Source: Diplonema japonicum (Eukaryota > Protista > Euglenozoa: Diplonemea). Taken from it: a DNA stretch of 64,000 nt. The notes beneath the pieces are model-generated. The model was not told where the DNA came from. It did not search any database and saw nothing but the letters and a program-made list of their open reading frames with translations. The stretch is from assembly GCA_964019335.1 (NCBI GenBank), contig OZ025650.1:744001-808000 (forward strand). Reading direction: 5' to 3'. The position numbers and the translations under genes were made by a program. This document shows positions 37,700-63,376 of this stretch, one piece after another. Numbering within the stretch: position 1 is the stretch's first letter; each line of letters starts with the position of its first letter.

Positions 37700-38911
37700 T
37701 TCGCCTGGGTTTCGCCAGACATCAGACTGGTCCAGCAAAGTCGCGGTTATCACCGCAAAAAAAAGTATGTGGGTACGTCCACGCCGGCCAAAACCGCCTC
37801 AGACACCTGGGAGGAGAAGCGGGTCTCGCTGGTCCCCGAACTATGGGACGGCGAAGTGGTACACCCAGAGAAGACAGGGGGGAAATCCCGAGGGGTCATC
37901 CTAACAAGGAATCCGGAGACAGTGCTCTCACTGAAACCCTTTCCAGGGTCCTCATCTGCCACCTTGTTCACCAAACAGGGTATCAAGACAATGCACCTTA
38001 TTGAGCTTAAGGGCGACGGTCCACCACCCCCGAAGTACACTGCTCCTAGAACAGTCCAGACAACCGCGACCACCGAGGCCGTCATCCTGGGCAAACGGAC
38101 AAGTCCCGGACACGTGGAAACAGGCGTTGGTCGTCCCGATTCCGAAGCCAAGCAAAGACCCCACTGAGATGGAGTCCTACCGCCCCTTCAGCCTGACAAG
38201 CTACCTAGGTAAACTCATGGAAAGGATGGTTGAGGCCCGCGTAACGTTCCTCCTCGACTCCCCAACGACGACGGTTGAAGGACTTCACCCCGCCCAAGCC
38301 GGATTCAGGAAGGGGAGGTCCACCGAAGAGCAAGTCGCTGCCATCGTACAACACGTAGCGACGAAGAGAGATGCGGACGTAAAGGAGGCCAGCCTCACCA
38401 TACTTTTCGAAGGCGTTCGACAGAGTCAACCACAAAGCCCTGATACAGAAGATGACGCAGAAGCGCTTCCCTGCAGCCTACAGTGGGTTGCCTCCTTCCT
38501 GGAGTTCAGGACAGCAAGAGTGATCGTAGAAGGTGTCAAGGGGTCCCCCTACAAAGTCAAGAGCGGCGTTCCGCAGGGTTCGGTGCTCGGTCCGGTCCTA
38601 TTCACCATTCGTCGAAGACCTTGCGAGGGAGCTCGAGGGAATGGCTGGTCTCGCCACGATCTACGCCGACGACCCGTCGTATCACAGGGTGCGTCAAAAA
38701 CACCTCCACCTCAGCCGTCATGTGCGAAGCCCGCTTGCGCCCCCTCGACCTGATGGCTGATCAGCGTCTGCTGTCCTATGGCAGAGGGTGCTAAGATGGG
38801 AAGGGACCCGGTGAACAAGGTGGCGCCCAAGGTGGAGCCCAAAATTGACAGACAAAAGACTGGAACACCTCCCCGTTTCCCCCCAGTGGTTATTATTGCA
38901 AAAAAAAAAAA
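37700..38911 (+). mobile_element. Degenerate, internally deleted non-LTR retrotransposon (RT remnant) ending 3 bp upstream of tRNA-Cys
   Basis: WKQALVVPIPKP..SYRPFSLTS, QAGFRKGRST, GVPQGSVLGP, IYADD across frameshifts; tail GTTTCCCCCCAGTGGTTATTATTGC(A)12. Confidence 0.85.
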
Positions 38912-38914
38912 TGT

Positions 38915-38986
38915 GGGTACGTAGCTCAGTGGTAGAGCGTTCGGCTGCAGTCCGATTGGTCCCTGGTTCGAACCCGGGCGTGCCCT
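38915..38986 (+). tRNA. tRNA-Cys(GCA)
   Basis: Acceptor GGGTACG/CGTGCCC, U73, anticodon loop CT-GCA-GT, GTTCGAA T-loop, T5 terminator. Confidence 0.95.
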
Positions 38987-39032: not shown

Positions 39033-39104
39033 AGGGCACGCCCGGGTTCGAACCAGGGACCAATCGGACTGCAGCCGAACGCTCTACCACTGAGCTACGT
39101 ACCC
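39033..39104 (-). tRNA. tRNA-Cys(GCA), inverted identical copy
   Basis: Reverse complement of 38915-38986. Confidence 0.95.
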
Positions 39105-39107
39105 ACA

Positions 39108-40660
39108 TTTTTTTTTTTGCAATAATGACCACTGCTTTTTAATATTTGTTCCACTGCCAGTGGGGGAGACAAAAGGAAAATTCTGAGCTAATAATAATAT
39201 CTGTTCCACTGCCGGGTCGGGAGCATCAGAGAAGGTTTGAAAAGGATAAAGGAAAATGGGGAAAGGAAGAAAAAATCAACAAAGATGAGTTGAAAAGCAG
39301 AGCTCGAGAAATCAAAAATCAAAGTGAAGGTATCATGAGCCTTTCGCCCAAGAAGAGAACAAACAGCACCATAGGTGGCGGGTCCTTTTTTTTCTTTAAA
39401 AAGCTTCTGTGTGGCCACTTACCAACAGAGAGGAGCGGTGAGTACTGGGACACTGTCCTTTTATCATTTCTTTTTTCTCTCCCTCTTCATTCCCTCCCAC
39501 CCTTATTAACATTACCCCTTTCCTTATTGTTTCACCCCTTTTTATTGAACGCCGAAGGCCCGCCCAGTCTGGTTCTCACCCCCTAATAAATTCCTTTGAC
39601 TGGACGTCCTTGGCCAACTCCGCACATTCCCCGCCAACAGCGCATCCTCCTCAAAAGGTTGGATCGTCTTAGGGATTTCAGGGCGACCATTGCTTAAACC
39701 AGCACGAGACCGTCCCCTTGCTGGATTTGTTGGGTCGGTGGGGCGCTAGATAATTAAAACATAAAATGAAAAGAAAAGGGGAAGAGAGAGGAATAGCAAC
39801 AGAAAAGACCTGGTAGCAGAACAGGGGAAAGATGACTCTACTCTTCTAAGTTCCCCATGTCGAGGGCCCCGGTCGTCGTCGTCGTCGGTGCTGGCGTCAG
39901 GCAACCAACGCGATGGAGCGGCAGGACCAACTTGTGAGAGGAAGGTAGGGGTTGGGAGAGGGATAGTTGATGTAGAGGGCCGGTCAGGGCCCGGATCAGC
40001 ACGAAAAACGCCCCCGGCTCCGCGCCACTCGAGAGAGATGCCTTTCCGGCTTCCGCTTCGTTCCCTCCCCGGCCAGAGCGTCAGCCTTCTCGTTCCCGTC
40101 CACCCCACAGTGGGAGGGCACAAACTGGAGGACCACCGTGTCCCCTGCGTGCGCGCCGCGGACACCAGCCGGCTCCACGTCTGGTGGTCGAGCTTCTCCC
40201 TCTGTCGCGTTGGGCCAGCTCGCAGCTGCTCGACGAGGGAGATCGACAGCGGGGACTTCGCCAGCGAAGGGTGTGTTTTTCGGAGGGTGGCCACCATATC
40301 CAGCGCCGTTTTCACAGCCATGCCCTCTGCCCGAAAAGATGAACAGAAGTCGTTGACGCCATGGCACACAGACACAGGGGTCAGGGGGGGAGGCAGCTGC
40401 AGATAAACCCCAGAGCCACCTTTCGCCTTCTGTCCGACCTGTACAACCGAGCCATCCGTGTAGGCATGGATGCCCGGGGGGAGGGCCGCAAGAGCAGCCT
40501 CGGCCGCCTTCCGCCTGTCCGCGAGCCCCTTCTTCCCCTTCCCTTTCCCTTTCCAGACACTGTCGTGTGTCGTCGTCGCCCCCGGTGTAGAGTCCCGTCG
40601 CCAGCGTGGCCGCCTGCGGTAGGAGGAATCGGAGCGTCGTCCGCAGGTCGGAGATCATCT
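39108..40660 (-). mobile_element. Degenerate non-LTR retrotransposon (RNase H remnant) pointing at the minus-strand tRNA-Cys
   Basis: FCSSFRAEGMAV and LQFVPSHCGVDGNEKADALA in shifted frames; tail CAGTGGTCATTATTGC(A)11 at 39108-39134. Confidence 0.75.
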
Positions 40661-40821
40661 CCTGCTGAGAGTCGATCGTCCTCTCAGCGCGGCGACGAGC
40701 TCAGTGAGAGCGGCGACCTCAGGCGAACTCTTTTTTGCGGTGATAACCGCAAATCTGCGGATTTTCTGGCAGCCTTTAAAAAGTTGCAGCATGGTTTCTT
40801 ATTATTGTCGGCTGTGGTGTA

Positions 40822-40838
40822 TCTCCTATGGTGTAGTG
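40822..40838 (+). pseudogene. 5' fragment (17 nt) of tRNA-Gln, left as a TSD
   Basis: TCTCCTATGGTGTAGTG identical to 42311-42327. Confidence 0.8.
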
Positions 40839-40857
40839 ACCGAGCGGTGCGAGAGGG

Positions 40858-41897
40858 ACAGAAAGAAAGAAGTGGCGATCATGAGGCTGAGGGTGGGGAA
40901 GAGCCCACTCACTTGCGGATACCTACTCATACCCCCAGTCGAGGAGGTCCCGTGCCATCTATGTTCGCAACCCCAGACTCTAAGCCACCTCCTACGGGAA
41001 TGCCAAGACGAAAAGAGGATCGACCAAAGGAGTCAGATCTTCGGTAGCTCCCTTCCTTCCCTCAAAGTCCTCCTGTCCACCGACGCCTGTAAGACCGCCC
41101 AGCTCTTGGAGCGGCAGGGAACATTGTGAAAAAACTTATAAATTATAATATATTATACTCTCCAAACATTGAGGTCTGAAGTTGTTATACGACTTCAGAC
41201 TGCAATTGTTTCTAACTCAATCTCTCGACTCTGGCTTCACTCCTATCCTTTCTTTTCACCTCCCTCCCCAGTGTCTTCCCTTATTTTCCATTACCAGGCC
41301 CCTGTCCCCCGCCCCCAGTGTTATTCAAATTTTCACTCACCTTTCATATAGAAAGAAAAAAGAAAAAAAAAAAAAAAAAAAGAAAAAAAAGGACAGATGA
41401 TTCAAGCTTCGGTGTACACAATCGAGCTTGATTTGAATTCCTTTATTTTGAGAAAAAAAAAAAAAAACTGAAGAACGAAACTTAATTGAATTGAATTTAT
41501 TGGCTCCCGAAAGCCCAACAAGTCCAGCAGACGGTGGAGTTTCACAGTCAGCTGGTTAATTTTTCACAATTGAAACTCCTCCAAAGTTCTTAAAATCTGG
41601 GAGGTCGTCTCTTGTTACTAGAGGCGGCTAATGCCTCGAGACCCAGGTGCTGCCTGGTGGGTGGGATCGGTTTTATTTTATTATGAAAAGAGCGTGGTGA
41701 GGGGGTCCAAGTAATTTACAACAGGGAGCAGCGGACCAGGACCCCTCGACCAATGGCTCAGTAACAGAGACTGCTTTTCACGAATCACTTTCAAACACCT
41801 CTCTTGGTTTGAAGTGATGTCCCTTTCCCTTTCCCTTGAATGGTTTTCTCTACTCCCCTTCGATCCTCCCGCCTGGTAGTGGAATATTTATTATTAT
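40858..41897 (+). mobile_element. 5'-truncated copy (A') of the full-length element
   Basis: Near-identical to 49940-51030; TSD TGCGAGAGGG (40848-40857 / 41898-41907); (TTA)n tail. Confidence 0.93.
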
Positions 41898-41912
41898 TGC
41901 GAGAGGGTCACC

Positions 41913-42297
41913 TTTTCCCTTCCTTTCCCTTCCTTCCCCTTCCTCTCACTGTTTCCCATTTCCTCTTTTTTTATTTTCACACTCACCAATGATTCGCTCA
42001 ATAGGAGCAACACCTCCCTGGGGGGCTTTCCGCCGGAGGTTCCAGCCAAAGAAGGACATCCAGCTGGAAGGTAGGCCCCCGTTTTTCTCTCACTTGACTG
42101 AGGGAATAATGTAATTCAGCCCTCTTCGGCTGTCCCAAAGCAGAGCACGGGTTGGTGGGGGACCAGGGCTCCTCCTGCTTGCAGAAGCCTGGTCCATTGC
42201 CCTCCCTATTTCCCCATGGTTTCCCTTCACCTTTTTTTCCCTTTTCTCAGGTGTTGCTCTCCATGGCGGCCCTGCATTGGTATTTTGAAAAAAAAAA
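41913..42297 (+). mobile_element. 385-bp non-coding poly(A)-tailed retroposed insertion (D)
   Basis: 12-bp TSD GAGAGGGTCACC (41901-41912 / 42298-42309); ends in A10. Confidence 0.75.
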
Positions 42298-42310
42298 GAG
42301 AGGGTCACCA

Positions 42311-42382
42311 TCTCCTATGGTGTAGTGGTTAGCACTCGGGACTCTGAATCCCGCGACCGCGGTTCGAATCCGCGTAGGAGAA
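42311..42382 (+). tRNA. tRNA-Gln(CTG)
   Basis: Acceptor TCTCCTA/TAGGAGA, anticodon stem CGGGA/TCCCG, loop CT-CTG-AA, GTTCGAA, T7 terminator. Confidence 0.93.
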
Positions 42383-42389
42383 TTTTTTT

Positions 42390-42626
42390 GCCAAGTCTTT
42401 GATGTGCGTCAAGCAGAGGACAATTACACCCTGGGAGAGCATGCAAAAGTGGTGGAAGGCGAAGGCCCTCCGGCTATCGAGGTGACGGTAGTCCACCCTT
42501 GCGCGGAGAGACAGGCGGAGGCATATCAGGCGAAGCGGATACGGTGACACGAAGAAGAGGAGTATGGTGTCACCTAGATGACCTGTCCAAGCGTATATCA
42601 CCATCACCTGACCGAGCGGTGCGAGA
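42390..42626 (+). mobile_element. 3' fragment of a distinct retroelement (E), possibly restriction-like-endonuclease type; continues at 43792-43799
   Basis: Ends ...TGACCGAGCGGTGCGAGAGGGTCACC (also at 40837-40857 + 41908-41912); encodes AIEVTVVHP...AYQAKR. Confidence 0.5.
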
Positions 42627-43784
42627 ATTTCGAGAAGTTTGAAGAGCTAAACAGGGAACAAGAAGTTGCGATCATGAGGCTGAGAGTGGGGAAGAGCCCC
42701 CTCATAAGCGGGTATCTACTCAATCCCCCGGCCGATGTGGTCACATGCCACCTTTGTTCGATGCCTCAGACGCTGAGCCACCTCCTGAAAGAATGCCAGG
42801 ACGATGGTAGAGCTGACCAGAGAAGTCAGATCTTCGGTTCCTCCCTTCCTTCGCTCAAGGCCCTACTGTCAACTGACGCCGGGAAAACCGTACAATTCCT
42901 GGAACAGCAGGGCCTGTTGTGACCGACCGTGAGATATAATCCCCTTTATAAATTATATTATAAACTAAACTTTACTTATATACTTTTCTCTCAAATTATC
43001 CTGAGTTTGAAGCTGTACTGTTGTTATACGACTTCAGACAGCAATTGTTTCTAACTCAATCTCTCGACTCTGGCTTCACTCCTATCCTTTCTTTTCACCT
43101 CCCTCCCCAGTGTCTTCCCTTATTTTCCATTACCAGGCCCCTGACCCCCGCCCCCAGTGTTATTCAAAATTTTCACTCACCTTTCATATAGAAAGAAAAA
43201 AGAAAAAAAAAAGAAAAAAAGAAGGACAGATGATTCAAGCTTCGGTGTACACGATCGAGCTTGATTTGAATTCCTTTATTTTTGAGAAAAAAAAAAAAAA
43301 GAAGAAAAAAAAAAAGAAGAATATATATAAAAAAAAAAAAAAAACTGTAGAACGAAACTTAATTGAATTGAATTTATTGGCTCCCGAAAGCCCAACAAGT
43401 CCAGCAGACGGTGGAGTTTCACAGTCAGCTGGTTAATTTTACACAATTGAAACTCCTCCAAAGTTCTTAAAATCTGGGAGGTCGTCTCTTGTTACTAGAG
43501 GCGGCTAATGCCTCGAGACCCAGGTGCTGCCTGGTGGGTGGGATCGGTTTTATTTTATTATGAAAAGAGCGTGGTGAGGGGGTCCAAGTAATTTACAACA
43601 GGGAGCAGCGGACCAGGACCCCTCGACCAATGGCTCAGTAACAGAGACTGCTTTTCACGAATCACTTTCAAACACCTCTCTTGGTTTGAAGTGATGTCCC
43701 TTTCCCTTTCCCTTGAATGGTTTTCTCTACTCCCCTTCGATCCTCCCGCCTGGTAGTGGAATATTTATTATTATTATTATTATT
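42627..43784 (+). mobile_element. 5'-truncated copy of a sister subfamily (B)
   Basis: EVAIMRLRVGKSPL...CHLC...HLLKEC, diverged from A; 3'UTR near-identical to A; TSD TGCGAGA (42620-42626 / 43785-43791). Confidence 0.9.
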
Positions 43785-43808
43785 TGCGAGAGGGTCACCA
43801 TCTCCTAT

Positions 43809-44250
43809 ACGACACTGGGCTGCCGCTCCACGCGCTGCTTTCCAAGCACTCCGCCGAGGTCTGCGCCTTCATCGAGGCCTCCGGGCTCTTATCATGGTCT
43901 GAGTGTGGGATCTTCCCCCCGGCCGACGCAGCACAAGGGTGATCGTGAGCCCATTATAGACCCCCCCCCCTCCCCCTTTGTCCCCCCCCCCCCCCCCCCA
44001 CACACACACTCACACGCAAATGGGCCAAGAAACAACCTCCCGGGAGGCAGCCACAGGGAAGGCCGGGAGGGCGCAGGGCGCAGCAAGAGAACGCCCCTGC
44101 GTTCAGCCTCGAGGGGACCGCCCCGAATGTAATCAGCCAGGTCGGCTGTCCCAGGAAGGGGGAACGGAGCACCGAAGGGAGGTTCAGCCCACGTGGTGGC
44201 CCTCCCCCCACCCCCAGTTTCCCCCCAGTGGTTATTATTGCAAAAAAAAA
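43809..44250 (+). mobile_element. 5'-truncated element of a third family (C)
   Basis: Encodes DTGLPLHALLSKHSAEVCAFIEASGLL (similar to the ORF2 C-terminus); 34-nt tail identical to 38875-38908; TSD CACC(A/C)TCTCCTAT (43796-43808 / 51041-51053). Confidence 0.75.
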
Positions 44251-44287
44251 CCAACGATTCTAAAGCTACAGTTTCTGTACTTTATTG
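44249..44287 (+). other. Complete 39-nt euglenozoan (Diplonema-type) spliced-leader exon at the 5' end of the retrotransposon
   Basis: AACCAACGATTCTAAAGCTACAGTTTCTGTACTTTATTG; AAC start and conserved CAGTTTCTGTACT.TATTG end; not followed by a GT donor. Confidence 0.92.
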
Positions 44288-44341
44288 GGTGGGGGGTCTG
44301 ATACACTATCACATAATAAATTTTAATAAAAATTTATAAAA

Positions 44342-45724
44342 ATGGATCAGCAGACCAGCGCGGACGCCTCCACGAGGCCCCCACTGGACAGCCTGCAGAT
44401 GCAGGTGGACGAAGACGCCGCGGCGATGCCAGAGTTAAATCTGGTATTCGAAGAAGAAGAAGAGAAGAAGAAGGAGAAAAAGGACGAGGTGCGGAAGGGC
44501 AACTGGATCATCGGTCCGCTGCCGAAGGGAGTGGAGGAGAAGGGCGCAGCTGCGATTCTCGCAGCAACGGTCTCAGAGCAGACCGAGAAGGTCGTCATCC
44601 TGACGACGGAAGGCGCGTCCTTCCTCCTCTACACCGCACGCACCCCCCCCCACCACACCTGCATCAAGGTGAACGGCGCCACGGCAGAAGTCCTGCCGGC
44701 GATAAAGGTGGCCGACCCCCTGGAGTCCAGGGCTGCAGGAGGGAAGAAGTGGTCGAGGAAGGGGGAAGAAAAAAAAAAAAGAACAAAAGTCCACCAAGAC
44801 AGGTACAGCCCAGAAGAATTTCTGGAATTCTACGGCCGGTCGGTAGGGTGGCAGCTCTACTGCAAGGCAGTAGAAGAGTGGAGGAAGAGGACCGCCACAC
44901 CCCAAAAAAACACACAGGAGCCCCCCCAACAACAGCAACAACAGGCAACAATCTCGCCAGATATGGTAGCCCAGATGCAGAATCTGCATCAAGAAGTTGC
45001 GGCGCAGAGGGCCGAACTCTCGGCGCAGAGACAGGAGATCACCGCGCAGAGAGAGGAACTGCAGAGACAGAGGACGTCTCTGGCAGAAGCACAGTCCAGT
45101 TACCCGGCCCTGCAGAAACAGGTCAGTGCGCAAGGGGAGGCGGTGCTGAAGCAGGGGGAAGGACTGGCAGCCGTCCAGACCAGCATCCAACCCCTGCAGA
45201 AACAGGTAAGTGTGCAGGGGGAGGAGCTGCGGAAGCAGGGAGAGGGTCTGGCAGAGATCAGGACCAGCCTCCCGGCTCTGATGGAGCAGCTGAGGAGTCA
45301 ACAGGAGGCTCTGGAGAAAGGGGTGCGTGCCATGATGGCCAAGCAGGAGGAGCGGGACGCGAGGGACACCGCCAGAAGAACGGCCCTAAAGGCCAAAAAG
45401 GCCCAAACCACCGCCACACCCACAGCCCCGACACCGTCCAAATTCATCGGACCGGAGCTGGAACCGAACACCCCACAGCAACACCAGCCATCCTCGGGCT
45501 CGGAAACGGAGTTGGAAGACACTCCCGCCGGAGCAAAACCAGGAAGGCGCAGGGGCCAGGAATGGGCCTCTGCAAAGGTGTCGCTGAAGGCAGCGCCCTA
45601 CGCACCAGGGGGCTCGAAGGGTTCGAAGGGGACAACCTCCTCCTCCACCTCGACATCGCCGACACCGAGCACACCGGACACAGCGAAGAAGTCCGGGAAA
45701 GGCGGAAAATCAAAGAAGAGGTGA
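44342..45724 (+). CDS. Retrotransposon ORF1 (coiled coil, no CCHC knuckle)
   Basis: 460-aa ATG ORF 54 nt after the SL; Q/E-rich coiled coil with two 25-aa repeats; basic C-terminus. Confidence 0.85.
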   Translation: MDQQTSADASTRPPLDSLQMQVDEDAAAMPELNLVFEEEEEKKKEKKDEVRKGNWIIGPLPKGVEEKGAAAILAATVSEQTEKVVILTTEGASFLLYTARTPPHHTCIKVNGATAEVLPAIKVADPLESRAAGGKKWSRKGEEKKKRTKVHQDRYSPEEFLEFYGRSVGWQLYCKAVEEWRKRTATPQKNTQEPPQQQQQQATISPDMVAQMQNLHQEVAAQRAELSAQRQEITAQREELQRQRTSLAEAQSSYPALQKQVSAQGEAVLKQGEGLAAVQTSIQPLQKQVSVQGEELRKQGEGLAEIRTSLPALMEQLRSQQEALEKGVRAMMAKQEERDARDTARRTALKAKKAQTTATPTAPTPSKFIGPELEPNTPQQHQPSSGSETELEDTPAGAKPGRRRGQEWASAKVSLKAAPYAPGGSKGSKGTTSSSTSTSPTPSTPDTAKKSGKGGKSKKR

Positions 45725-46227
45725 AAAAGGTGATAAGTTTTTTCCATTTTACCATAATAGATAAGAAAGAAAAAAAAAAGAAAAAAGAAAGTGTTTCCCT
45801 ATTAAGCCCCCAACCCCCCAATTCGTCTACAAAAAAAAAAATAATAAAAAAAAAAAAAAAAAAAAAAAACCATAAAAAAAAAAACAAAAACAAAAAAAAA
45901 AACATAAAGAAAATAAAAGAACAAGAGAAAAAAAAAAAAACAACAAAAAAAAAATATAAAAATAAAAAAAAAATAATACACGACGACGACGACGACGACG
46001 ACAACGGGTCACAGCAATGTCATCTCTCTGCGCGAAGGAAGCTCGTACGACTTGGCTACAACTCGCGGCTAAATCCTGGCCGGCCCCGCACGTATAGGGG
46101 TGTCCAAACGGGACAAGGCGTTAGTGGTGGCGACGTAAGGTCTGTTAGGGCCGGCCCCCCCCAAGTCGTACAACCCTATCTTCGAAGACCTGAAGGTAGG
46201 GGTGACCACAAAGGCAGAGTGACATAC

Positions 46228-49200
46228 ATGCTGAAACGACCCTCGACCACACCGAGAAAGATGCGCAAAGGTTGCGGACCACATGATATGGACATCTTGG
46301 CGTGCGGTGACGTCGAGCAGAACCCGGGGCCAGCCGCGAAAGACGGATGGCTGAAGATAGTCTCGCTGAACGTGAGGTCCCTCAGAGCTAGGAAGGCCGA
46401 AATCGAGAAGGCTATCGAAGAAACAGCGCCGGACATCCTGTGTCTCCAAGAGACACACCTAACATCAGACGATGCGATCCACGGCTGGTTCGAAGGGTAC
46501 AGAGCTTTCCGAAGAGACAGGACGCGACCGAGAAGGAGGAATTTCCCCATAAAAGGGGGCGGCTTACTGACTCTCGTGAAAGAAGGCATCAACGCTAGCG
46601 GTGTCGAAAGGAAGGAGAAGAAAAATGACGTGACGGAAAGACTGGACGTCAAAATATACCCGCCAGGTCAAAAGGAGATCCTCCTGGTGAACATCTACCT
46701 TCCACCAACATCGCCGTCAGATCCGAGCGATGACAGACCGAGCATCGACACCTACTTCAACCCGAACACACTCCCGACAGGGGACAGAACCTTAATCATG
46801 GGGGATTTCAACGCCCACCACCCTCTGTGGGACGGGAGAAGAAAGAAAGAGGACCTCATAGGTGACAAAGTCGCAAAGTGGATGATCGAGAAAGGGATGC
46901 GACCCTGGAATGACAAAGCCACACCGACACTATTGAACACAAGAGGTTCCTTATCATCACCGGACCTGGTGATAAGCGGGCCAGACATGGACTCTAGATC
47001 CTGGACAACCCTCGATTCATGGGGGTCTGACCACATACCCATGTCCATCCGGATAAGAACGAAATACGAAACCGGACCAACCATTAAGAAATTCAGCTTC
47101 AAAAAAGCTGACTGGGAGGGGTACAGAAATCATCTGGAGTACACCCTGAGGCACCTGCAGAGAACAGGAGACCCGGTCAGGCTAAACAAGCAGTTCACTG
47201 AAGCAGTCAAGGAGGCCGCCAGGCTCTTCATCCCAAGAGGGGGAGCGAGAGGCGGGAAAGCGTGGTGGACTGAAGAGCTGACGCAACTGGTTGGAAGAAG
47301 AAACGCTCTGAAGAAGGAGATTATGTCGGACATCGGCATCCCATCGATAGAACAATGCGAGAGGCTTGGTGAAATCAGCAGGCAAGTGCAGAAACAGATC
47401 GATGAAGGGAAGAAAAGAGCGTGGGCCGACTACATGAAGGAGCTGTCTCAGAAAAAGGACTTGGGACACGCTTTCAGGACGATAAAAACGCTCGATGGCA
47501 GGAAGGACAAAGATCCAGTAGCACCACTAATGGCAGGCGGCAAGCTACACACATCGGCGAAGCAAAAAGCAGACGTCCTTGTGGAGCACTACGCAAAGGC
47601 TTTTGCACCCCACCTTAACAAGGACACAAAGAAGATGCTGGACGGTGAAAACAGGAAGTCCAAAGTGATCAAGGACTTGAGGGACAGGGTCACTTGCCCA
47701 GGGATAAGCATGGAGGAACTGAAGCACGCGCTGAGGCAGTTGAAGAAGGGGAAATCCCCGGGCCCAGACGGTGTCTACAACGAGATGCTGAAACACCTGG
47801 GGGGGACGGCCATGGACACATTACTCCATCTGTTCAATATGTCATGGGAGAAGGGAGTGGTACCATCAGACTGGAGGTTCACGCACATAATCCCACTTTA
47901 CAAAGGAAAGGGCAAGTCAAGAAGTGATCCGGCATCGTACAGACCGATATCGCTAACCTCCAACATTTCAAAGACAATGGAGAGGATAGTAAAGATAAGG
48001 GTCGACTACCACCAAGACGTGGGAGATGTGAAGAGGGTGCACAAAATGCAGTCAGGTTTCAGGAAAGGGCGCTCCACAGAAGAGAACGTCCTGCAAGTGA
48101 CCACGAAACTGAACCGCATCAGAGACGATGAGTTCTGCGGCGGACTTTTGCTCTTCGACCTGAAAGGAGCCTTCGACACAGTGTGGCACAAGGGTCTAAA
48201 TGCGAAAATGAGGAGTAATGGCTACCCGCAAAGAATTACGGACTGGGTGGCCGCTTTCCTAGACCAGAGGATCGCTGCCGTCAAGGTGAGTGGCGAAACA
48301 GGGAAGCACGAACACATAACGGGTGGGGTTCCACAGGGAACCATCCTTGCCCCAACCCTCTTCTCGATCTACATGGACGACCTCTCAGAGACGTTCGAAA
48401 AGGAGGTCATTGATGCCGTGATGTACGCAGACGACATTGCGGTGGTGCTGCACGAAAAAGACCTGGACAGCTTGAATGGAAAACTGATGAAGATCCTGAG
48501 GGTTGTGGAGAGCTGGTGCTCGAGAAACTCGATGGTGATCTCCAAGGGAAAGACAGAGTTCCTTCCCGTTGCTGGCATCTCCTATCCGCAGAGAACACTG
48601 AAGGGGAAGATCAGAGCAACTTTCAAGACCGGCGAAGAACTCGAGGTGGTCGAAAAAACAAAGCTGCTCGGAGTCACCTTCGAGGAGGACATGCTTTTCT
48701 CCGAACACTCCAGAGACGTCTTGGAAAGAGGTGAAAGCAGGGTCAGGCTGCTGAGCTGCCTTGCGGGAACGAGATGGGGTTGCAAGAAGGTGGTGTTGAG
48801 GGCTCTATACCTCACATATGTGCAACCAGTCTTCAGATACTGCTTGGGCGTGTACGGGTCATTTCTCCCGAGCGGGAGGAACACGCCCCACGAAGGCATC
48901 AAGAAGCTTCAATACAGGGCAGCGGTGAAGATCACAGGCTGCATCGCGTCATCAGAGACATTCGCGACACTGAACGAAGCGGGGCTGTGGACCCTGGATG
49001 CGCTGATCGAACACGACAGCCTGTTGCTCTACGAGTCACTGATGAGAAAAGTGGACACCGCCGCATACCAGGCGACTCAGCCTCTGGAGGATCTGACCAG
49101 GTACGAGAAGCTCCTACCAAGGAGGACTTGGTCTGACAAACAGAGAGAGGCATCGAAAGCCTACAAACTCCCAGAGAGGACGGGCACACCTCACTCGGGC

Positions 49201-50211
49201 GCCGTCTTCATGAGGAGACTCGCGGTTGCACCCTGGCAAAGATTCGAGGGGCAACTCGTGCTCTCCCCCTTCCTAGACACGCAGGTGAAAAGGACGGACC
49301 CAAAAGAGGTCAGGAAAGAGGCAACAACGAACACCCTGAACAGGTTATGCGAGAAACACGGCCGGGCATTCTGCATGGTGTTCACAGACGGGTCCGTAAA
49401 GGATGGGAAAAACGGAGGCTCGGCCGCCATCCTGCTGCACAACGGGTCCGATGCTGCCTACGGGATCAGCGGTGGACTGTATTCGACATCCTACAAATGC
49501 GAACTCAGGGCCCTGAGGCTAGGGATCCGACTGGCGACAAGACTCTCAGAGAGGAAGCTTGCAAGCCAAGGGATGGTTCTGATATGCACAGATTCGCAGT
49601 CGGTGATACGGAAGATGTGCCAGGGACACATGTCGGCAGCCTCCAAAGATGACTTCGAACTCTGGCAGGAGGTCGCGAGCTTGACAGGCAGAGGCCACAA
49701 GCTAATCGTTCAATACGTCCCGAGTCACTGCGGGTACAAGTGGAACGAGAAGGCGGACCAGAAGGCAAAAGAGGCGAGCGAAAGACTGGCCCACACCCGT
49801 GAGACAGACATTGAGGTGGTTAAAACTCTGGTGAGGAAGCATGTCATCAGAAGCCACCTCCGCCTATGGAAGGATACTGGCGTCACAAAGACGTACAGGG
49901 AGCAGTTTGCCGGAAGTTACGAGAAGTTCGAGGAGCTGGACAGAAAGAAAGAAGTGGCGATCATGAGGCTGAGGGTGGGGAAGAGCCCACTCACTTGCGG
50001 ATACCTACTCATACCCCCAGTCGAGGAGGTCCCGTGCCATCTATGTTCGCAACCCCAGACTCTAAGCCACCTCCTACGGGAATGCCAAGACGGAAAGAGG
50101 ATCGACCAAAGGAGTCAGATCTTCGGTAGCTCCCTTCCTTCCCTCAAAGTCCTCCTGTCCACCGACGCCTGTAAGACCGCCCAGCTCTTGGAGCGGCAGG
50201 GAACATTGTGA
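46228..50211 (+). CDS. Retrotransposon ORF2: 2A peptide, AP endonuclease, reverse transcriptase, RNase H, CCHC finger (start codon uncertain)
   Basis: GDVEQNPGP; SLNVRS, CLQET, GDFNAH, SDH (APE); YRPISLTS, QSGFR, FDLKGAFD, GVPQG, YADD (RT); FTDGS, ELRAL, TDSQS, VPSHCG..NEKAD (RNase H); CHLC..HLLREC. Confidence 0.95.
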   Translation: MLKRPSTTPRKMRKGCGPHDMDILACGDVEQNPGPAAKDGWLKIVSLNVRSLRARKAEIEKAIEETAPDILCLQETHLTSDDAIHGWFEGYRAFRRDRTRPRRRNFPIKGGGLLTLVKEGINASGVERKEKKNDVTERLDVKIYPPGQKEILLVNIYLPPTSPSDPSDDRPSIDTYFNPNTLPTGDRTLIMGDFNAHHPLWDGRRKKEDLIGDKVAKWMIEKGMRPWNDKATPTLLNTRGSLSSPDLVISGPDMDSRSWTTLDSWGSDHIPMSIRIRTKYETGPTIKKFSFKKADWEGYRNHLEYTLRHLQRTGDPVRLNKQFTEAVKEAARLFIPRGGARGGKAWWTEELTQLVGRRNALKKEIMSDIGIPSIEQCERLGEISRQVQKQIDEGKKRAWADYMKELSQKKDLGHAFRTIKTLDGRKDKDPVAPLMAGGKLHTSAKQKADVLVEHYAKAFAPHLNKDTKKMLDGENRKSKVIKDLRDRVTCPGISMEELKHALRQLKKGKSPGPDGVYNEMLKHLGGTAMDTLLHLFNMSWEKGVVPSDWRFTHIIPLYKGKGKSRSDPASYRPISLTSNISKTMERIVKIRVDYHQDVGDVKRVHKMQSGFRKGRSTEENVLQVTTKLNRIRDDEFCGGLLLFDLKGAFDTVWHKGLNAKMRSNGYPQRITDWVAAFLDQRIAAVKVSGETGKHEHITGGVPQGTILAPTLFSIYMDDLSETFEKEVIDAVMYADDIAVVLHEKDLDSLNGKLMKILRVVESWCSRNSMVISKGKTEFLPVAGISYPQRTLKGKIRATFKTGEELEVVEKTKLLGVTFEEDMLFSEHSRDVLERGESRVRLLSCLAGTRWGCKKVVLRALYLTYVQPVFRYCLGVYGSFLPSGRNTPHEGIKKLQYRAAVKITGCIASSETFATLNEAGLWTLDALIEHDSLLLYESLMRKVDTAAYQATQPLEDLTRYEKLLPRRTWSDKQREASKAYKLPERTGTPHSGAVFMRRLAVAPWQRFEGQLVLSPFLDTQVKRTDPKEVRKEATTNTLNRLCEKHGRAFCMVFTDGSVKDGKNGGSAAILLHNGSDAAYGISGGLYSTSYKCELRALRLGIRLATRLSERKLASQGMVLICTDSQSVIRKMCQGHMSAASKDDFELWQEVASLTGRGHKLIVQYVPSHCGYKWNEKADQKAKEASERLAHTRETDIEVVKTLVRKHVIRSHLRLWKDTGVTKTYREQFAGSYEKFEELDRKKEVAIMRLRVGKSPLTCGYLLIPPVEEVPCHLCSQPQTLSHLLRECQDGKRIDQRSQIFGSSLPSLKVLLSTDACKTAQLLERQGTL

Positions 50212-50535
50212 AAAAACTTATAAATTATAATATGTTATACTCTCCAAACATTGAGGTCTGAAGTTGTTAAACGACTTCAGACAGCAATTGTTTCTAACTC
50301 AATCTCTCGACTCTGGCTTCACTCCTATCCTTTCTTTTCACCTCCCTCCCCAGTGTCTTCCCTTATTTTCCATTACCAGGCCCCTGTCCCCCGCCCCCAG
50401 TGTTATTCAAATTTTTCACTCACCTTTCATATAGAAAGAAAAAAGAAAAAAAAAAAAAGAAAAAAAAGAAGGACAGATGATTCAAGCTTCGGTGTACACA
50501 ATCGAGCTTGATTTGAATTCCTTTATTTTGAGAAA

Positions 50536-50595
<60 letters not shown>

Positions 50596-51045
50596 GAAGA
50601 ACGAAACTTAATTGAATTGAATTTATTGGCTCCCGAAAGCCCAACAAGTCCAGCAGACGGTGGAGTTTCACAGTCAGCTGGTTAATTTTTCACAATTGAA
50701 ACTCCTCCAAAGTTCTTAAAATCTGGGAGGTCGTCTCTTGTTACTAGAGGCGGCTAATGCCTCGAGACCCAGGTGCTGCCTGGTGGGTGGGATCGGTTTT
50801 ATTTTATTATGAAAAGAGCGTGGTGAGGGGGTCCAAGTAATTTACTACAGGGAGCAGCGGACCAGGACCCCTCGACCAATGGCTCAGTAACAGAGACTGC
50901 TTTTCACGAATCACTTTCAAACACCTCTCTTGGTTTGAAGTGATGTCCCTTTCCCTTTCCCTTGAATGGTTTTCTCTACTCCCCTTCGATCCTCCCGCCT
51001 GGTAGTGGAATATTTATTATTATTATTATTCAAAAAAAAACACCC

Positions 51046-51117
51046 TCTCCTATGGTGTAGTGGTTAGCACTCGGGACTCTGAATCCCGCGACCGCGGTTC
51101 GAATCCGCGTAGGAGAA
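51046..51117 (+). tRNA. tRNA-Gln(CTG), identical to 42311-42382
   Basis: Same cloverleaf; T7 terminator. Confidence 0.93.
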
Positions 51118-51897
51118 TTTTTTTAGTCTTGTCAGAATTTAACTGTCTGTTCCTTGATTTCTTCGGTCTTAGCAGCTTCACGGCGATCTCTCTGGTTGGT
51201 GAGCTGACATATTTCTTGAAATCTTGGCTGTCAGGACATTGCTCCTTGATTGGCTTTGGACTAACATTATTTTAACACAGGCGATCGATGCTGCTGGGCT
51301 GAACAGAAGAGACAAGAAATAACCTCCTACCAATCTTCGGTTTTTTTGTTCAGGGTTTTTCCTGATCACCCAACCCAAAAGGAACCAGACAGGGAAATCA
51401 ATTCCCCTCCCCCTTTTTGTATCGATTTTTATTCTTTTTTTTTCCTTTTCCCTTCCTTCTTGCCACGGCCTGTTTCACATACTCTCCTCCGCATCCACAC
51501 CCACAGGATGACAGCAAAGGGCGCTGGTCGCTGGATGTGATAATAAGAAGAAATTTCCTCCTGAAAGACAAAATGATTGAATTCAAGAAAATGTTCCATT
51601 TTTCTGTGATTTTATTTTACCCAGTCTTGCAAAGTGTTTTCCATTATTTATATTACCTTAAGTAAATTTTTCTGCCTGGTTATTAAATGGGTTTGGCCCT
51701 CCTATACCCTTCTCTTCCTTTTTTTTTCCTGCACTTGTTGAGTAATTTTACTTTACACCCATTTCTTTTTGTTTTATCTCTTTCTTTTTTGTTTTGTGTT
51801 TGTCGAAAAAAAAAATATCAAAAAAAAGAACAAAAAAAATAAAAAAAACAAAACAAAAAGAGGGTTTAAAAAAAAAAAAAGCGACAATACAAGAACG

Positions 51898-55659: not shown

Positions 55660-55784
55660 GGAAATCTATTTTTTCTTCCCCCCCCCCCCGTACTTTGCCC
55701 GTACTTTTTCAACAGTCTCCCCTGATTTCCTTTTAACTTTCTTTCCTTCCCACCCGAGAGAGAAAAAAAAATGAAACGGGCACG

Positions 55785-56456
55785 ATGAGTCCTCCAAATA
55801 CCAAAATAGCTGTGTTCCTATTTGTTGTTCATGCGTTACAGGAAGCAACATGCCTCCTAACGGTCCCGTGTGTTGCTGAGCAGGTTAATGGGACAGAATG
55901 GATGGAAGACCCTTGGGTGCCCAAGTGTGAGAATGGTGCGTGGGAGTCAGTACAGTGCAGCTTGGATAAGGAATGGTGTTGGTGTGTAAACACACAAGGA
56001 GAGGTTGAAAAGGGAAGCCAGTTACAAAACTCAGAAAGCGCCCCCGATTGCGGAGGGGACCCCGACACGGGTGTGGCCATCTTTGTCATCATCGGTGTGA
56101 TGATAGTGGTGTCTTTTGCCATTACCTTGTTCTGCCTCGTGAAGCGGTCACACATTCAGGCCGCGCATATTAATGAGGTATTGGTGGACGAGGACTCGAT
56201 GCAGTCTTACTCTCCTTCTTATGTTAACGACTCGTTCACAGCACCTACCATCCAAGAGACGCCTCAGCAACCCCTTGCCACTAACCCTCCTACTCCTCCC
56301 ATTCCAAAAATACCTGCCTGTTTCCTCCCCTCCCCTCTCGTTCCCATTGCTGCTATTGCAAGCACCACCCCTCGTGGTGTAGCAGCCACCACCCCGAGGG
56401 GCACCTCACTGACTCAGACATCAAGTTCGGCTACGAACCAGAGATTGATTGGATGA
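55785..56456 (+). CDS. Single-pass membrane protein with thyroglobulin type-1 domain
   Basis: Signal peptide; PKC.NG.W..VQC....WCWCVN..G; TM helix; Pro/Thr-rich tail. Confidence 0.8.
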   Translation: MSPPNTKIAVFLFVVHALQEATCLLTVPCVAEQVNGTEWMEDPWVPKCENGAWESVQCSLDKEWCWCVNTQGEVEKGSQLQNSESAPDCGGDPDTGVAIFVIIGVMIVVSFAITLFCLVKRSHIQAAHINEVLVDEDSMQSYSPSYVNDSFTAPTIQETPQQPLATNPPTPPIPKIPACFLPSPLVPIAAIASTTPRGVAATTPRGTSLTQTSSSATNQRLIG

Positions 56457-57622
56457 AGGAGGTCAAAAATGTGTGTGTGGGGGGGGGGGGGGGGGGGGAG
56501 TGTTTTCTGTTGCGTATTAGTATTAAATGCAAATAAAGAAAAGGAAAAAAAAAAAAAAAAAGGAATGCAATGATAAGAGTGCACACAGCATTGTAAGCTT
56601 TATCGGGGTTTATTCAATATCCTCCTTCAAAAACCCCACGGGAAAAGGAAAAAAAAGAGGGCAAAGAAGAAAATATCAGTGCTGTTAGCCTCATAAGGAC
56701 AGTTCGCCTAAAGCGGGGGGGGGGGGGGGGGATGATTTAGAAACTCATGCCTTGGTCCCTAACTTCGCAAGTTGCACCCAACATGTGGTTTATTTAATAC
56801 TTTTTGTAGTATTCATCCGTAAGGTTATGCTTCCTTTACCCCTTTAACCCCTTTTAAAAGTTTTATTGGCAGAAGTATTTGAAAAAGGGCAAACCGCCGT
56901 GTGTTGAATTGTGGATATGAGGCTTGAGATCTGGCCTTAACAATGGACCTCAGTCAAACGCAAAAAGATTTTTTTTTTTTTTTTTTTTTTTTTGCACGTT
57001 ATGTTCGGTTCTTTATGTTCCCGCAACCCCCCTCATTCTTTTCCACTTTTCTCTTCTTTCCATTTTTTTTTTTTTAATGTCTCTCTTTTTTTTTCTATAT
57101 TGACATACACTTCTCTTTTGTTTCATTCCCATTCTGCTGCCCTTTCGCTATTTGTCACAAGTCTCGTGTCACTGGGAGAAAAGAAAAGAAGAAAAGGGAG
57201 GAGGGGGGGACACCAATCATTTTTTCTTCGTGAAGCACGATTGCTATCAAAAAGAATAATGAATGACGCAGATTAGAGGGACGGGCTTTGATTCCAAACG
57301 ACTGCAGTGTGTCGTGGGTTCTCTTACCATTACGAGGTGGTTTGTGAGCAAGGGGCGTATCTTTTTTTTTTTTTTTTTTTTTTTTTTTTGCCACGAAAAA
57401 AAAAAAAAAACACAGAAATAACGGAAAAAAAAAAAAAAAAAAAAACCATTCTTTATTATCCTTATTAGTTTCTTTCCCCCCCCTCCTTTTAAACTTCTAT
57501 TACATATCACTCAACAGGGGGGGCGGGGGAGGAGGGTGGTATAAAACACACACAAACCCCCCCTTTTTTTAATTCATTCCTTTTACCCCCCTTTTTTTGG
57601 TGTACTTTGATGTGCAACAAAA

Positions 57623-59176
57623 ATGTCTGATGAGCAGAGTATAAATACTGCAGAGGACCGACAAGGAGCCGTAGGCGCGGTCGTCTTGGCAGGGGTATCA
57701 ACCGTGTTTCATAGTGTGGGGACTGTATTTGTGTTTTGGTTGGGACATTTAAAATGGAGTTCGGGTCAATATTCTGAGTCTGCCTCTGTTGCAGCACCGG
57801 TACACGTTGCCAACCAAAGTGATGAGTTTACTGATTCTGCGTTAACAGGCGTGCAAATAATGTTTTGGCAATGCTTGTTGGAAGGAATATTTATGTCGGG
57901 TGTTGTGGGTGTACCGACCATGCTTGCGTACTTAGCACGCAAAGCAGAAGATACGCGTGCGGCTGAGATGTCTTCTGGGATACAGTTACAAGCAGCGGAG
58001 CTTACGCTTACAACCTCTTCAGGAGAGGAGAAGAGAAGGAACTCTGTCGACACACTGACATCCAATGAACTGAAAAATATTTTAGTAGGAGACGCTTGGT
58101 GTGATGTCGACGAAGATCAAATCTCAGCCGGGGAACACAGCCTGCCCCCTATGAGGCGGAGAAGGGTAACCTTTAATCACCGCATCGAGTATGACCCACC
58201 GCCACCCCCGCCGATCCCTTTTGAAAATATTACTTCCCGGTTAAAGAGAGAGACAAGACCTTCGCATAGAATGAGCACATCAGCTTTCATTGCAGCTGCT
58301 GTTCTAGTCTCCTCTACAGCAGTTCGACAGGTTATCCAAGAGAAGCAGAGAACTCCGATGCCAATCCAGCTCCCTCCTAAACGCGCTGCCTTTTTATGCA
58401 TCCTGTACGGGTTCGCACGGGCTGTTTCCGTACTCGGCAACTACATGGGCCTCGCGTCTGATCTTGGGCTTTGTTCCGTTGCTATTTTATTTTCTTCGAC
58501 ACCTATGTTCTCGATGGTGCTGCGGGTGGCGTTGCTCGGGGAGTCGTTCACAGCCTCGCATCTTCCTGGGGTGATTCTCATGCTTGTCGGCTGTGCTATG
58601 GTGGTCATGAACTCTCCTGCCTTCACCTCCTTCGTCGTGCTTATCATGGGCGGGCTCGGCGGTGCTGTGGCTCACTTTTTCCACAATGTGATCCGTACCC
58701 AGGTGCATCCGTACTTCATCGCTGTGTCGATGACGGTGGCTGGGTGTTTGAGTTGCGGGATTGTGTTGTTGGCACAAGGTGCAGGCTCACCTTCGGGAGA
58801 GCAATGGGGTTACATTATGGGGCTTTGCGTCTGTTGTTTGCTTTCAGACACCACGCAGGCAGCAGGGTCGCCTGAGAGCCCTCATGTCCCAGCCGGGTTC
58901 GCTCGTGCCTTGGCCATTGCCCTTGCGCTTGGGTTGCAAACAGTTGTCATCGACCAGCCCCCTGCAACCCCCACCTCTTTAGCTGCGATATTCACCTTCT
59001 CCGCCACCATCTTGCTCGAAGTCAAGCGGATGTCCACGGTGTACCTTCCCTACCTCCCGCTCTCAACAGTCCCTATTGACGAGCCACCTGAGCTTCCCGA
59101 CACACCGCCGGAACCTCGACCTCCTACACCGCCTCCCCCACGAGTGAGACGGTCTGCACGCGCTCTTGAAGTTTGA
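57623..59176 (+). CDS. DMT/EamA-family membrane transporter
   Basis: ~10 hydrophobic helices; STPMF...LLGESF EamA-like motif; large cytosolic insert. Confidence 0.7.
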   Translation: MSDEQSINTAEDRQGAVGAVVLAGVSTVFHSVGTVFVFWLGHLKWSSGQYSESASVAAPVHVANQSDEFTDSALTGVQIMFWQCLLEGIFMSGVVGVPTMLAYLARKAEDTRAAEMSSGIQLQAAELTLTTSSGEEKRRNSVDTLTSNELKNILVGDAWCDVDEDQISAGEHSLPPMRRRRVTFNHRIEYDPPPPPPIPFENITSRLKRETRPSHRMSTSAFIAAAVLVSSTAVRQVIQEKQRTPMPIQLPPKRAAFLCILYGFARAVSVLGNYMGLASDLGLCSVAILFSSTPMFSMVLRVALLGESFTASHLPGVILMLVGCAMVVMNSPAFTSFVVLIMGGLGGAVAHFFHNVIRTQVHPYFIAVSMTVAGCLSCGIVLLAQGAGSPSGEQWGYIMGLCVCCLLSDTTQAAGSPESPHVPAGFARALAIALALGLQTVVIDQPPATPTSLAAIFTFSATILLEVKRMSTVYLPYLPLSTVPIDEPPELPDTPPEPRPPTPPPPRVRRSARALEV

Positions 59177-59982
59177 GCGTTTCTCCCTATTCCCGGGAAA
59201 GAAAAACAAAAAGAAGAAGAAGAAAAAAACGGAAGAAAATTGAGAACACAGAAAAAAAAAAAAAAAAAGAAAGAAAAATTATACTGATATGTTCCTGTTT
59301 GTTCGGTCCCCCCCTCCTCTCCCCCCCCCCCCCCCCCCCCCCCTTCTGCTTCTCCCCCCTCCTCCAAGGCGCGGTGTGCATGCGGGTCGGGTTTTACGCT
59401 TGCGAGTCGTGCTCGTATCCATCCGTGCTTTGCCGTTATTCTAGTAAGTGATGAGTACAATACAAGTGATAGACAAAACGTGGCTCAGAGATGCTTGACA
59501 TGAGTGCCCGGTTCCTTTTGATTAAGACTAAATGAGAACGAGTGAGATCCGACTCGTATGCACAGGTCTGGGGATTGAAAGATTGCGCCAGTGGCTTTTT
59601 TTCCATACATGAAACCATTAAAGCAGGTTGTTCCGTGGTGGCTGTCTCATAGTCTGAATTGTGCTGTGGGATGACAAGGAGTCGGAACTGGTATTCCGAA
59701 CTCCGGTCCGCCCGGAGGAGATTCAGGGGGGGAAAAAAAACCAAAATCACGTGCTCTTTTTACCCCCTCCCCTATCCCCTTCACCCTTTTAAAAAAGAAT
59801 TCTCATACACAGCCACCCCACCACCACACGCCACTGCCCCGACCCCTCCTCCCCATATTCCCCGTGCTTCCCCTTTTCAAAAAAGATATTTATGATGTTT
59901 TTTTTATACTTCATTTCCCATTTACTTGTTAATACCTGACACTACTACTATTCAAAAAAGGGCGAAGGAAAAAAAAAAAAAA

Positions 59983-61724: not shown

Positions 61725-61864
61725 CTACCTACTGATGACACTGACTAGCACCTTATTGGGGCCTCTTAGAGAGGGGCCTCTTACTCTTATTTATATTTTG
61801 TGTCGGAGTTGTTAAAGATAGCAAACAAGACGACAGGAAGGAAAAAGAAAGAAGAAACAAAAGA

Positions 61865-63133: not shown

Positions 63134-63249
<116 letters not shown>

Positions 63250-63308
63250 TTTTTTTTTTCCCTCGAACTTTTCATTTCTTTTCTATTTTTGTTTCGTCTT
63301 CACCTCTG

Positions 63309-63353
<45 letters not shown>

Positions 63354-63376
63354 CGAAGAAAAAAAAAAAAAAAAGA

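Follow-up and report, generated by a model that had tools for sequence, protein, structure and literature searches.

Layered non-LTR retrotransposons upstream of tRNA genes in the diplonemid Diplonema japonicum

Introduction

In a 64,000-nt stretch of the genome of the marine diplonemid Diplonema japonicum (contig OZ025650.1, positions 744,001–808,000; hereafter the window, whose own numbering is used below), several retrotransposons devoid of long terminal repeats (non-LTR retrotransposons) lie one within another at positions 40,822–51,124, directly upstream of a tRNA-Gln gene. This locus raises the question of whether the elements accumulated there by repeated insertion guided by the tRNA gene and, if so, from what the distance to the gene is read. 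The initial annotation of the window had described a stack of layers at short, fixed distances from the tRNA and had proposed that several diplonemid families use tRNA genes as a safe harbour. The evidence presented below makes it very probable that the region preserves, layer by layer, the genuine insertions of a guild of non-LTR retrotransposons of the apurinic endonuclease (APE) type that target tRNA genes.

Targeting of tRNA genes is itself known, e.g., for TRE5, NLTR-A, and Ty3; what is new here is the lineage, the stacking of multiple families in two registers, and the presence of copies capped by a spliced leader. We found no report of tRNA-associated retrotransposons in Euglenozoa in the searchable literature. 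The non-LTR examples of tRNA targeting collected in a 2018 review are all dictyostelid (PMC5911963), the D. papillatum genome paper lists genes resembling long interspersed nuclear elements (LINEs) with no analysis of their targets, and the D. japonicum genome paper is silent on transposable elements and nuclear tRNA genes (PMC13598402).

Structure of the Nested Stack

The analyzed assembly (D. japonicum YPF1604, 62.5 Mb) was built from PacBio HiFi and Hi-C data (PMC13598402). The tRNA genes of the window were called by ARAGORN and Rfam, junctions and target site duplications (TSDs) were checked by direct reading and string search, and element copies were identified by self-comparison of the region. 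Five copies, designated A', D, B, C, and A, were confirmed in the tRNA-Gln stack with the TSDs originally assigned to them, and all five share the orientation of tRNA-Gln (Table 1). When later layers are peeled off, their 3' ends are found 16 (A', once D is removed), 13 (D), 16 (B), 5 (C), and 15 nt (A) from position +1 of the tRNA. The layering, the common orientation, and the fixed distances claimed in the initial annotation therefore all hold for these copies. The TSD of C, with one mismatch between its two copies, spans positions −5 to +8 of tRNA-Gln. The true TSD of A may be only 8 nt long, because the final 3 nt of the tabulated repeat coincide with the first 3 nt of the spliced leader that opens the element.

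The nucleotide identity to the 3' end of A amounts to 94.8% for A' (matched over 40856–41898) and 87.1% for B (matched over 42628–43781; 76% at the amino acid level). Within each sub-stack, the younger-looking copy is the one nearest to the tRNA: A is intact, D is near-identical to dozens of copies, and divergence is greatest in B, as predicted by repeated insertion beside an intact tRNA gene. The D family as a whole is high-copy and young, with 172 first-look candidates that are 99–100% identical. The two tRNA-Gln(CTG) genes are completely identical across 79 nt, including the T-run (T7) that follows them.

The initial annotation had added a further element, E, inserted twice at position −1, which was not borne out as retrotransposition. 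E was rejected as a retrotransposon family: it is single-copy, its 241-nt body (42386–42626) matching only itself in the 62.5-Mb genome, and the body shows no significant similarity to the second open reading frame (ORF2) of A. Since the same 25 nt are common to both junctions, they cannot be counted as independent targeted insertions, and E is excluded from the evidence for targeting. The order observed at 40822–40857 and 42383–42626 is a 17-nt tRNA-Gln fragment (t17), the last 25 nt of E, the first tRNA-Gln gene, the unique 244-bp spacer E2, and the second tRNA-Gln gene. This order could have arisen from a local three-copy tandem array of the tRNA and its spacer followed by an internal deletion, from retro-copying of an RNA whose end is the RNase P site (inserted twice at −1, the TSDs measuring 17 and 79 nt), or from one old insertion with a 79–84-bp TSD that duplicated the whole tRNA gene. 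All three models fit the observed order; the 45-bp TSD of a D copy elsewhere in the genome (see below) shows just that long TSDs exist.

Table 1. Features of the tRNA-Gln stack and of the neighboring tRNA-Cys stacks in the window. Starts of the two TSD copies are given in parentheses.
Feature	Position	Strand	TSD	Evidence and remarks
C-family copy, 5'-truncated	37779–38911	+	TGTGGGTACGT (37768–37778 and 38912–38922)	Decayed reverse transcriptase, RVT_1 E 8e-12; A12 tail
tRNA-Cys(GCA)	38915–38986	+		ARAGORN/Rfam
tRNA-Cys(GCA), convergent partner 46 bp away	39033–39104	−		ARAGORN/Rfam
Stack upstream of tRNA-Cys(−)	39108–40730	−		Three nested tails
C-type mini-tail	39108–39135	−		A11
G-type tail fragment, short	39139–39189	−		
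G-family element, 5'-truncated	39190–about 40730	−		(TTA)n tail; RNase H remnant, RNase_H E 0.005, weak, below Pfam cut-off
t17, orphan 17-nt 5' fragment of tRNA-Gln	40822–40838	+		
First part of 25-nt 'E1' leader	40839–40857	+		Identical to 3' end of E2; holds 5' TSD copy of A' (40848–40857)
A', 5'-truncated A-family copy	40858–41897	+	TGCGAGAGGG (40848 and 41898)	C-terminal ORF2 codons, 3' untranslated region, (TTA)n
D, short element, 385 bp	41913–42297	+	GAGAGGGTCACC (41901 and 42298)	Poly(A)-tailed
tRNA-Gln(CTG), copy 1	42311–42382	+		ARAGORN/Rfam; T7 terminator 42383–42389
E2, single-copy spacer between tRNA-Gln genes	42390–42626	+		Resumes as TGCGAGAGGGTCACCA at 43785–43800 beyond B
B, older 5'-truncated relative of A	42627–43784	+	TGCGAGA (42620 and 43785)	
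Orphan 8-nt 5' fragment of tRNA-Gln	43801–43808	+		Within 5' TSD copy of C
C, 5'-truncated C-family copy	43809–44250	+	CACCnTCTCCTAT (43796 and 51041)	Tail CAGTGGTTATTATTGC(A)9
Complete 39-nt spliced leader	44249–44287	+		5' end of A
A, full-length intact element	44252–51030	+	CAAAAAAAAAC (44241 and 51031)	
ORF1 of A	44342–45724	+		460 aa
ORF2 of A	46228–50211	+		1327 aa; 2A motif, APE, reverse transcriptase, RNase H, C-terminal CCHC knuckle
tRNA-Gln(CTG), copy 2	51046–51117	+		ARAGORN/Rfam; T7 terminator downstream

Genome-Wide Association with tRNA Genes

To place the stack in its genomic context, tails of families A (37 independent tails, all outside the window), C (20 tails), and D (20 tails) were taken in search order, blind to tRNAs, and their downstream flanks were then read. 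A tRNA gene on the same strand directly adjoins 14/37, 6/20, and 6/20 of these tails, respectively, at a distance of 12–19 nt after the (TTA)n of A, 3–7 nt after the poly(A) of C, and 4–12 nt after D. The chance expectation is ~0.01 per sample even assuming 1,600 tRNA genes (P ~1e-39 for A, ~5e-17 for C, and ~5e-17 for D). When all direct cases are pooled, the distances are confined to family-specific ranges: a median of 15 nt for A (n = 17), 3–7 nt for C (n = 13), 13–18 nt for family F with the tail CAGTGGTWCATTTA(TTA)n (n = 6), and 1–13 nt for D (n = 22). In every direct case the 3' end of the element faces +1 of the tRNA on the same strand. More than 20 isoacceptor types are targeted, among them Leu, Ser, the selenocysteine tRNA (tRNA-SeC), and the intron-containing tRNA-Tyr, and no common motif was found in the junction bases.

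The narrow family-specific offsets, the many isoacceptors, and the unconserved junction sequence bear out the earlier proposal that targeting is based on distance rather than on sequence. With the tail mapping, they also sustain its core inference: several diplonemid non-LTR families insert at fixed, sequence-independent distances upstream of tRNA genes, and they do so genome-wide.

The converse test started from the 60 best-scoring tRNA genes of a covariance-model search. A recognizable tail within 20 nt upstream was found for 22 of them (~37%), including 11 D, 7 (TTA)n-type, and 4 C tails; a regular expression accounted for 21 of these cases, and the remaining one, a G-type tail, was measured by eye. 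Paralogous tRNA genes with and without an insertion are alike in the proximal 12–15 nt and divergent beyond. Empty and filled copies of tRNA-Thr(AGT), for example, hardly differ over the proximal 14 nt, and the (TTA)n tail begins directly beyond. A long duplication is that of a 410-bp D insertion (loci L102/L134, G000:C15:260157-261071), where a 45-bp TSD covers positions −6 to +39 of tRNA-Asp, and a 39-nt orphan half-tRNA is left upstream of the element and an intact gene downstream.

Most tails with no adjacent tRNA gene are probably the outer, older layers of stacks. Forty of these 51 tails run into sequence that is repeated within the small set of loci analyzed and that belongs to other elements, whether their 5' ends or their truncated bodies. 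In at least 4 more, the tail is followed by coding sequence of other families that resembles reverse transcriptase (RT) or APE. Several outer tails carry a footprint consisting of a few leader bases and the first ~8 bases of a tRNA, followed by the next element (e.g., loci L008 and L102). A search with Rfam for other non-coding RNA genes beside the tRNA-less tails yielded only one further tRNA. At locus L037 (G000:C25:513674-515274), a tRNA-like sequence with A-box-like and B-box-like motifs, called by neither ARAGORN nor Rfam, is located ~13 nt past an A tail; it may represent the original target, a tRNA gene now decayed.

Among other genes transcribed by RNA polymerase III (Pol III), one of the twelve 5S rRNA genes is occupied: a D tail with A17 ends 8 nt upstream of it (locus L146, G000:C52:246942-247060, minus strand). 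The remaining 11 have no recognizable tail within ~20 nt upstream. No upstream tail was found for any of the six U6 genes, which is not significant given the 37% occupancy of tRNA genes (P ~0.06). In five of these six genes the upstream DNA is unique, is devoid of retroelement tails, and contains a common block, CACACSGCAGARACCC, that resembles a proximal sequence element; T- and A-runs stand before one copy (L143), which may have arisen by retro-copying.

Coding Capacity, Tail, and Relatives of Element A

Element A has the structure of an autonomous APE-type non-LTR retrotransposon, with APE and RT domains and no LTRs, and it is accompanied by truncated copies with TSDs (A', B, and C). ORF2 matches the Pfam families Exo_endo_phos, RVT_1, and RNase_H (the latter at residues 1050–1184) and, among PDB structures, LINE-1 ORF2p and R2. 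It opens with a 35-residue leader that ends in the 2A-type motif DVEQNPGP (residues 28–35), and a very A-rich low-complexity spacer of ~500 nt (45725–46227) separates it from ORF1. The 3' untranslated region (UTR) of ~820 nt ends with GGTAGTGGAATATTTA(TTA)n.

A complete ORF of the D. japonicum transcriptome (EukProt) matches ORF2 of A with 100% identity, and many 3' ends are 99–100% identical across the genome; A-type elements were thus recently active. The next relatives of ORF2 are D. ambulator transcripts (40–43%) and D. papillatum proteins (31–36%). The tRNA-associated families with APE, RT, and RNase H are themselves divergent, with 28–64% amino acid identity.

Families A, F, G, and C have a common 3' motif, YAGTGG(W)n, with an AT-rich trinucleotide repeat downstream of it (50960–51013 in the window and five further loci). 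In A, this motif is preceded by TTCGATCC, and the two motifs resemble the B and A boxes of tRNA genes in reversed order. Apart from YAGTGG and the AT-rich repeat, no conserved 3' RNA fold was apparent across the families.

Spliced Leader at Element 5' Ends

The 5' end of A is formed by a 39-nt spliced leader (SL), which is followed by a 54-nt UTR before ORF1. Two of its nucleotides deviate from the spliced leader published for Diplonema (PMC3795323). The same 39 nt are found at three other loci (L158, L163, and L175), behind a conserved promoter-like stretch and before a GT intron, and this organization identifies these loci as genuine SL RNA genes. The leader also heads another A copy, at least two other families in tRNA stacks, and further retro-copied families near contig ends. 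Full-length copies of A and of several other families that begin with it were noted at L030, L176, L177/L185, L179, and L184, and some copies contain a partial second, relic leader. Since full-length copies start with the complete leader, their template was a trans-spliced mRNA, and the expression of the elements depends on host trans-splicing.

Another leader-capped family forms head-to-tail arrays within ~10 kb of many contig ends (11 loci), some of them inserted into short CAAACCYG-like repeats. These arrays may be telomere-associated retrotransposons beside an unusual terminal repeat.

The tRNA-Cys Pair and Surroundings of the Island

The second and third stacks of the window occupy both sides of a convergent tRNA-Cys pair. 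On the plus side, a C-family copy ends 3 nt before the tRNA, with a TSD that covers its positions −3 to +8; on the minus side, three tails are nested (Table 1). An inverted repeat of host DNA (GCGGTTATCACCGC, then an A-run) at 37743–37756 and 40737–40750 encloses the double stack, which suggests that the tRNA-Cys pair arose by an inverted duplication predating the arrival of the elements. Tail-to-tail tRNA gene pairs separated by ~45 bp are common in the genome (38915–39104 in the window and nine further loci), and such convergent pairing leaves both upstream sides open to insertion.

Every long ORF on either side of the island (1–36600 and 55700–64000) is encoded by the plus strand. This arrangement resembles a polycistronic unit of euglenozoans with the island inside it; each stack is oriented like its own tRNA and not like the surrounding unit.

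Comparison with Known Systems

The initial annotation named Ty3/Ty1 and TRE5/DGLT-A as analogues; the closest one, NLTR-A of Dictyostelium purpureum, was missing from its list. This non-LTR element, which includes an RNase H domain, resides 2–6 bp upstream of tRNA genes (PMC5006619). Like A, it is of the APE type, with two ORFs and RNase H after RT. The likeness is structural. NLTR-A has an amoebozoan host, and neither a 2A peptide nor a (TTA)n tail nor a spliced-leader cap is reported for it; in D. japonicum several families with different offsets coexist and stack.

TRE5-A and TRE3-A of D. discoideum, next in likeness and ahead of the LTR elements, are likewise non-LTR elements that insert independently of sequence at a set distance from tRNA genes and, in addition, at a 5S gene; 61% of tRNA genes are occupied in D. 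discoideum vs. ~37% of those sampled here. TRE5-A ORF1p binds TFIIIB (TBP, Brf1, and Bdp1), and targeting by TRE5-A depends on the B box (PMC5911963). However, TRE5 inserts ~44–54 bp upstream in the opposite orientation and TRE3 40–150 bp downstream, whereas the elements studied here insert 1–19 nt upstream in the same orientation (PMC5911963). The TRE elements also group under L1, with a zinc finger in place of the RNase H found in A and an oligo(A) tail. The differences in distance, orientation, and RNase H speak against membership of A in the TRE5/TRE3 family by descent. The insertion of Ty3 a few bases from the Pol III start and of DGLT-A 13–33 bp upstream of tRNA genes matches the −5 and −15 classes observed here; in contrast to our elements, both are LTR elements with an integrase and short fixed TSDs and do not use target-primed reverse transcription.

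The initial annotation had assigned the families to an Ingi/I-like type. A does share with ingi and L1Tc a euglenozoan host and the order APE–RT–RNase H. L1Tc reportedly carries an N-terminal 2A self-cleaving motif as well, which is ascribed to work by Heras and colleagues in 2006. RNase H and the 2A motif also occur in other clades and are not decisive for Ingi membership. In contrast to A, with its two ORFs, spliced-leader cap, and (TTA)n tail, ingi and L1Tc have a single long ORF, a poly(A) tail, and no association with tRNA genes; the two ORFs of A and the ~500-nt A-rich spacer between them depart from the single-ORF organization of the Ingi clade. The internal Pr77 promoter of ingi and L1Tc gives unspliced transcripts (PMC1874656), whereas the 5' end of A, judged by length alone, leaves no room for the 77-nt Pr77 hallmark before ORF1. 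The best 120 RT matches include no protein named as trypanosomatid; the best named matches are D. papillatum proteins auto-named 'jockey', 'X-element', and 'BS', along with unnamed reverse-transcriptase proteins of a bird. An Ingi-type label for A is not established.

The Drosophila I factor resembles A in the APE–RT–RNase H order, the presence of ORF1, and a trinucleotide-repeat 3' tail. Its repeat is (TAA)n. In our elements the repeat is (TTA)n, and the I factor, in contrast to them, has an internal promoter and does not target Pol III genes. Finally, DNA copies that begin with the spliced leader, sometimes with a relic second leader, are known from dinoflagellates as SL-tagged retrogenes (PMC12014239, PMC5585692), a proof that trans-spliced mRNA was reverse-transcribed. 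In dinoflagellates it is host genes that were retro-copied, whereas here the leader is carried by autonomous retrotransposons.

Mechanism and Alternative Explanations

Integration most probably proceeds by target-primed reverse transcription at a family-specific distance and always in the orientation of the tRNA. The first nick falls on the strand that templates the tRNA, ~15 nt (12–19) before +1 for A and F, 3–7 nt for C, and 1–13 nt for D. The second nick is made 7–45 nt downstream and can fall inside the tRNA. In that case the leader and the beginning of the tRNA are restored by the TSD, and the 5' junction of the element retains an orphan 5' piece of the tRNA. Each newcomer inserts on the tRNA side of the older copies, which are thereby pushed outward from the intact gene, and the stack grows. 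By analogy with TRE5-A and Ty3, ORF1p or ORF2p may gauge the distance from the Pol III machinery on the gene (TFIIIB/TFIIIC/Pol III); the D tail upstream of a 5S gene lends weak support to the Pol III initiation complex as the ruler. The (TTA)n and A-run tails would end up at about −15 to −45, where TBP/TFIIIB sits in other eukaryotes; we speculate that tails at this place may sustain the promoter, leaving the gene active and available for further insertions.

A tentative joint reading would join these elements into self-perpetuating, Pol III-anchored LINEs: the families would read registers near −5 and −15, their tails would rebuild the TFIIIB region, leader-capped mRNAs would be copied back with no internal promoter, and long TSDs could duplicate tRNA genes, possibly including the tRNA-Gln pair.

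The main rival explanation accepts targeting but supposes that an element protein reads the tRNA DNA directly (the A box at +8 to +19, or DNA shape), independently of the Pol III machinery, with a DNA-binding domain beside the endonuclease setting the distance. The constant distance of the A box from +1 in all tRNA genes would suit such a ruler, 6/6 U6 genes, whose promoters depend on upstream elements, are unoccupied, and the A-box-like 3' motif YAGTGG hints at a relation of the elements to tRNA sequence. However, the targeted tRNAs differ much in their 5' halves (Leu, Ser, SeC, and intron-containing Tyr), and a D tail is also found at −8 of a 5S gene, whose internal promoter is of another kind. 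Moreover, the known cases that have been tested, TRE5-A, Ty3, and Ty1, all use protein contacts (PMC5911963), and we consider direct reading unlikely. An explanation that dispenses with targeting altogether would invoke random insertion followed by survival beside tRNAs in a gene-dense polycistronic genome, or co-amplification of elements and tRNAs by segmental duplication. It can point to the gene density and to the flanking genes, which are all on one strand, to three pairs of duplicate loci with identical flanks (L010/L011, L034/L035, and L122/L123), and to the two tRNA-Gln genes, which may be a local duplication. Yet selection cannot account for a uniform orientation and for distances that are specific to each family and exact to the nucleotide; the loci differ in flanks, tRNA species, and TSDs, and the TSDs bracket the element rather than the tRNA, all of which makes this explanation very improbable. 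Still harder to credit is an assembly chimera of repeats collapsed around tRNA-Gln: contigs from public short-read runs do break within every repeat, but the unique junctions at 40700–40881 and 42361–42654 are contained in short-read contigs from independent runs, the copies differ from each other (95 and 87% identity), a matching TSD is present at every junction, and the same architecture recurs at dozens of loci in an assembly based on HiFi reads.

Several points weigh against the explanation that we prefer. None of the short-read contigs from the public runs spans the whole stack. The list of tRNA genes is partial, with 63 genes scored among ~1,600 rough candidates. ORF1, one of the two candidate distance readers, matches no Pfam family, has no usable neighbor in the Atlas, and contains no recognizable domain. 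The target may also be narrower than 'any Pol III gene', given the U6 (0/6) and 5S (1/12) counts. Lastly, A-runs follow many of the (TTA)n tails and, if taken as element sequence, would make the distances of A bimodal (4–6 and 12–19 nt). The A-runs are best read as target DNA derived from earlier poly(A)-tailed insertions, since the TSD of A in the window includes the C before the run, as seen for this one copy only; counted as target, they leave one distance mode instead of two.

Biological Significance

Targeting of tRNA genes is a textbook case of convergent evolution toward safe harbours, known so far from fungi and dictyostelid amoebae. The elements of D. japonicum would add a third, very distant lineage, the Discoba, and would strengthen the argument that compact genomes drive the safe-harbour solution. 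Their leader-capped expression contrasts with that of the Pr77-driven, unspliced ingi and L1Tc elements of trypanosomes. The offsets of the different families would constitute a natural series for mapping the little-known euglenozoan Pol III initiation complex, and the elements themselves would offer a route to site-specific transgene integration in diplonemids, an abundant group that is genetically young as a model.

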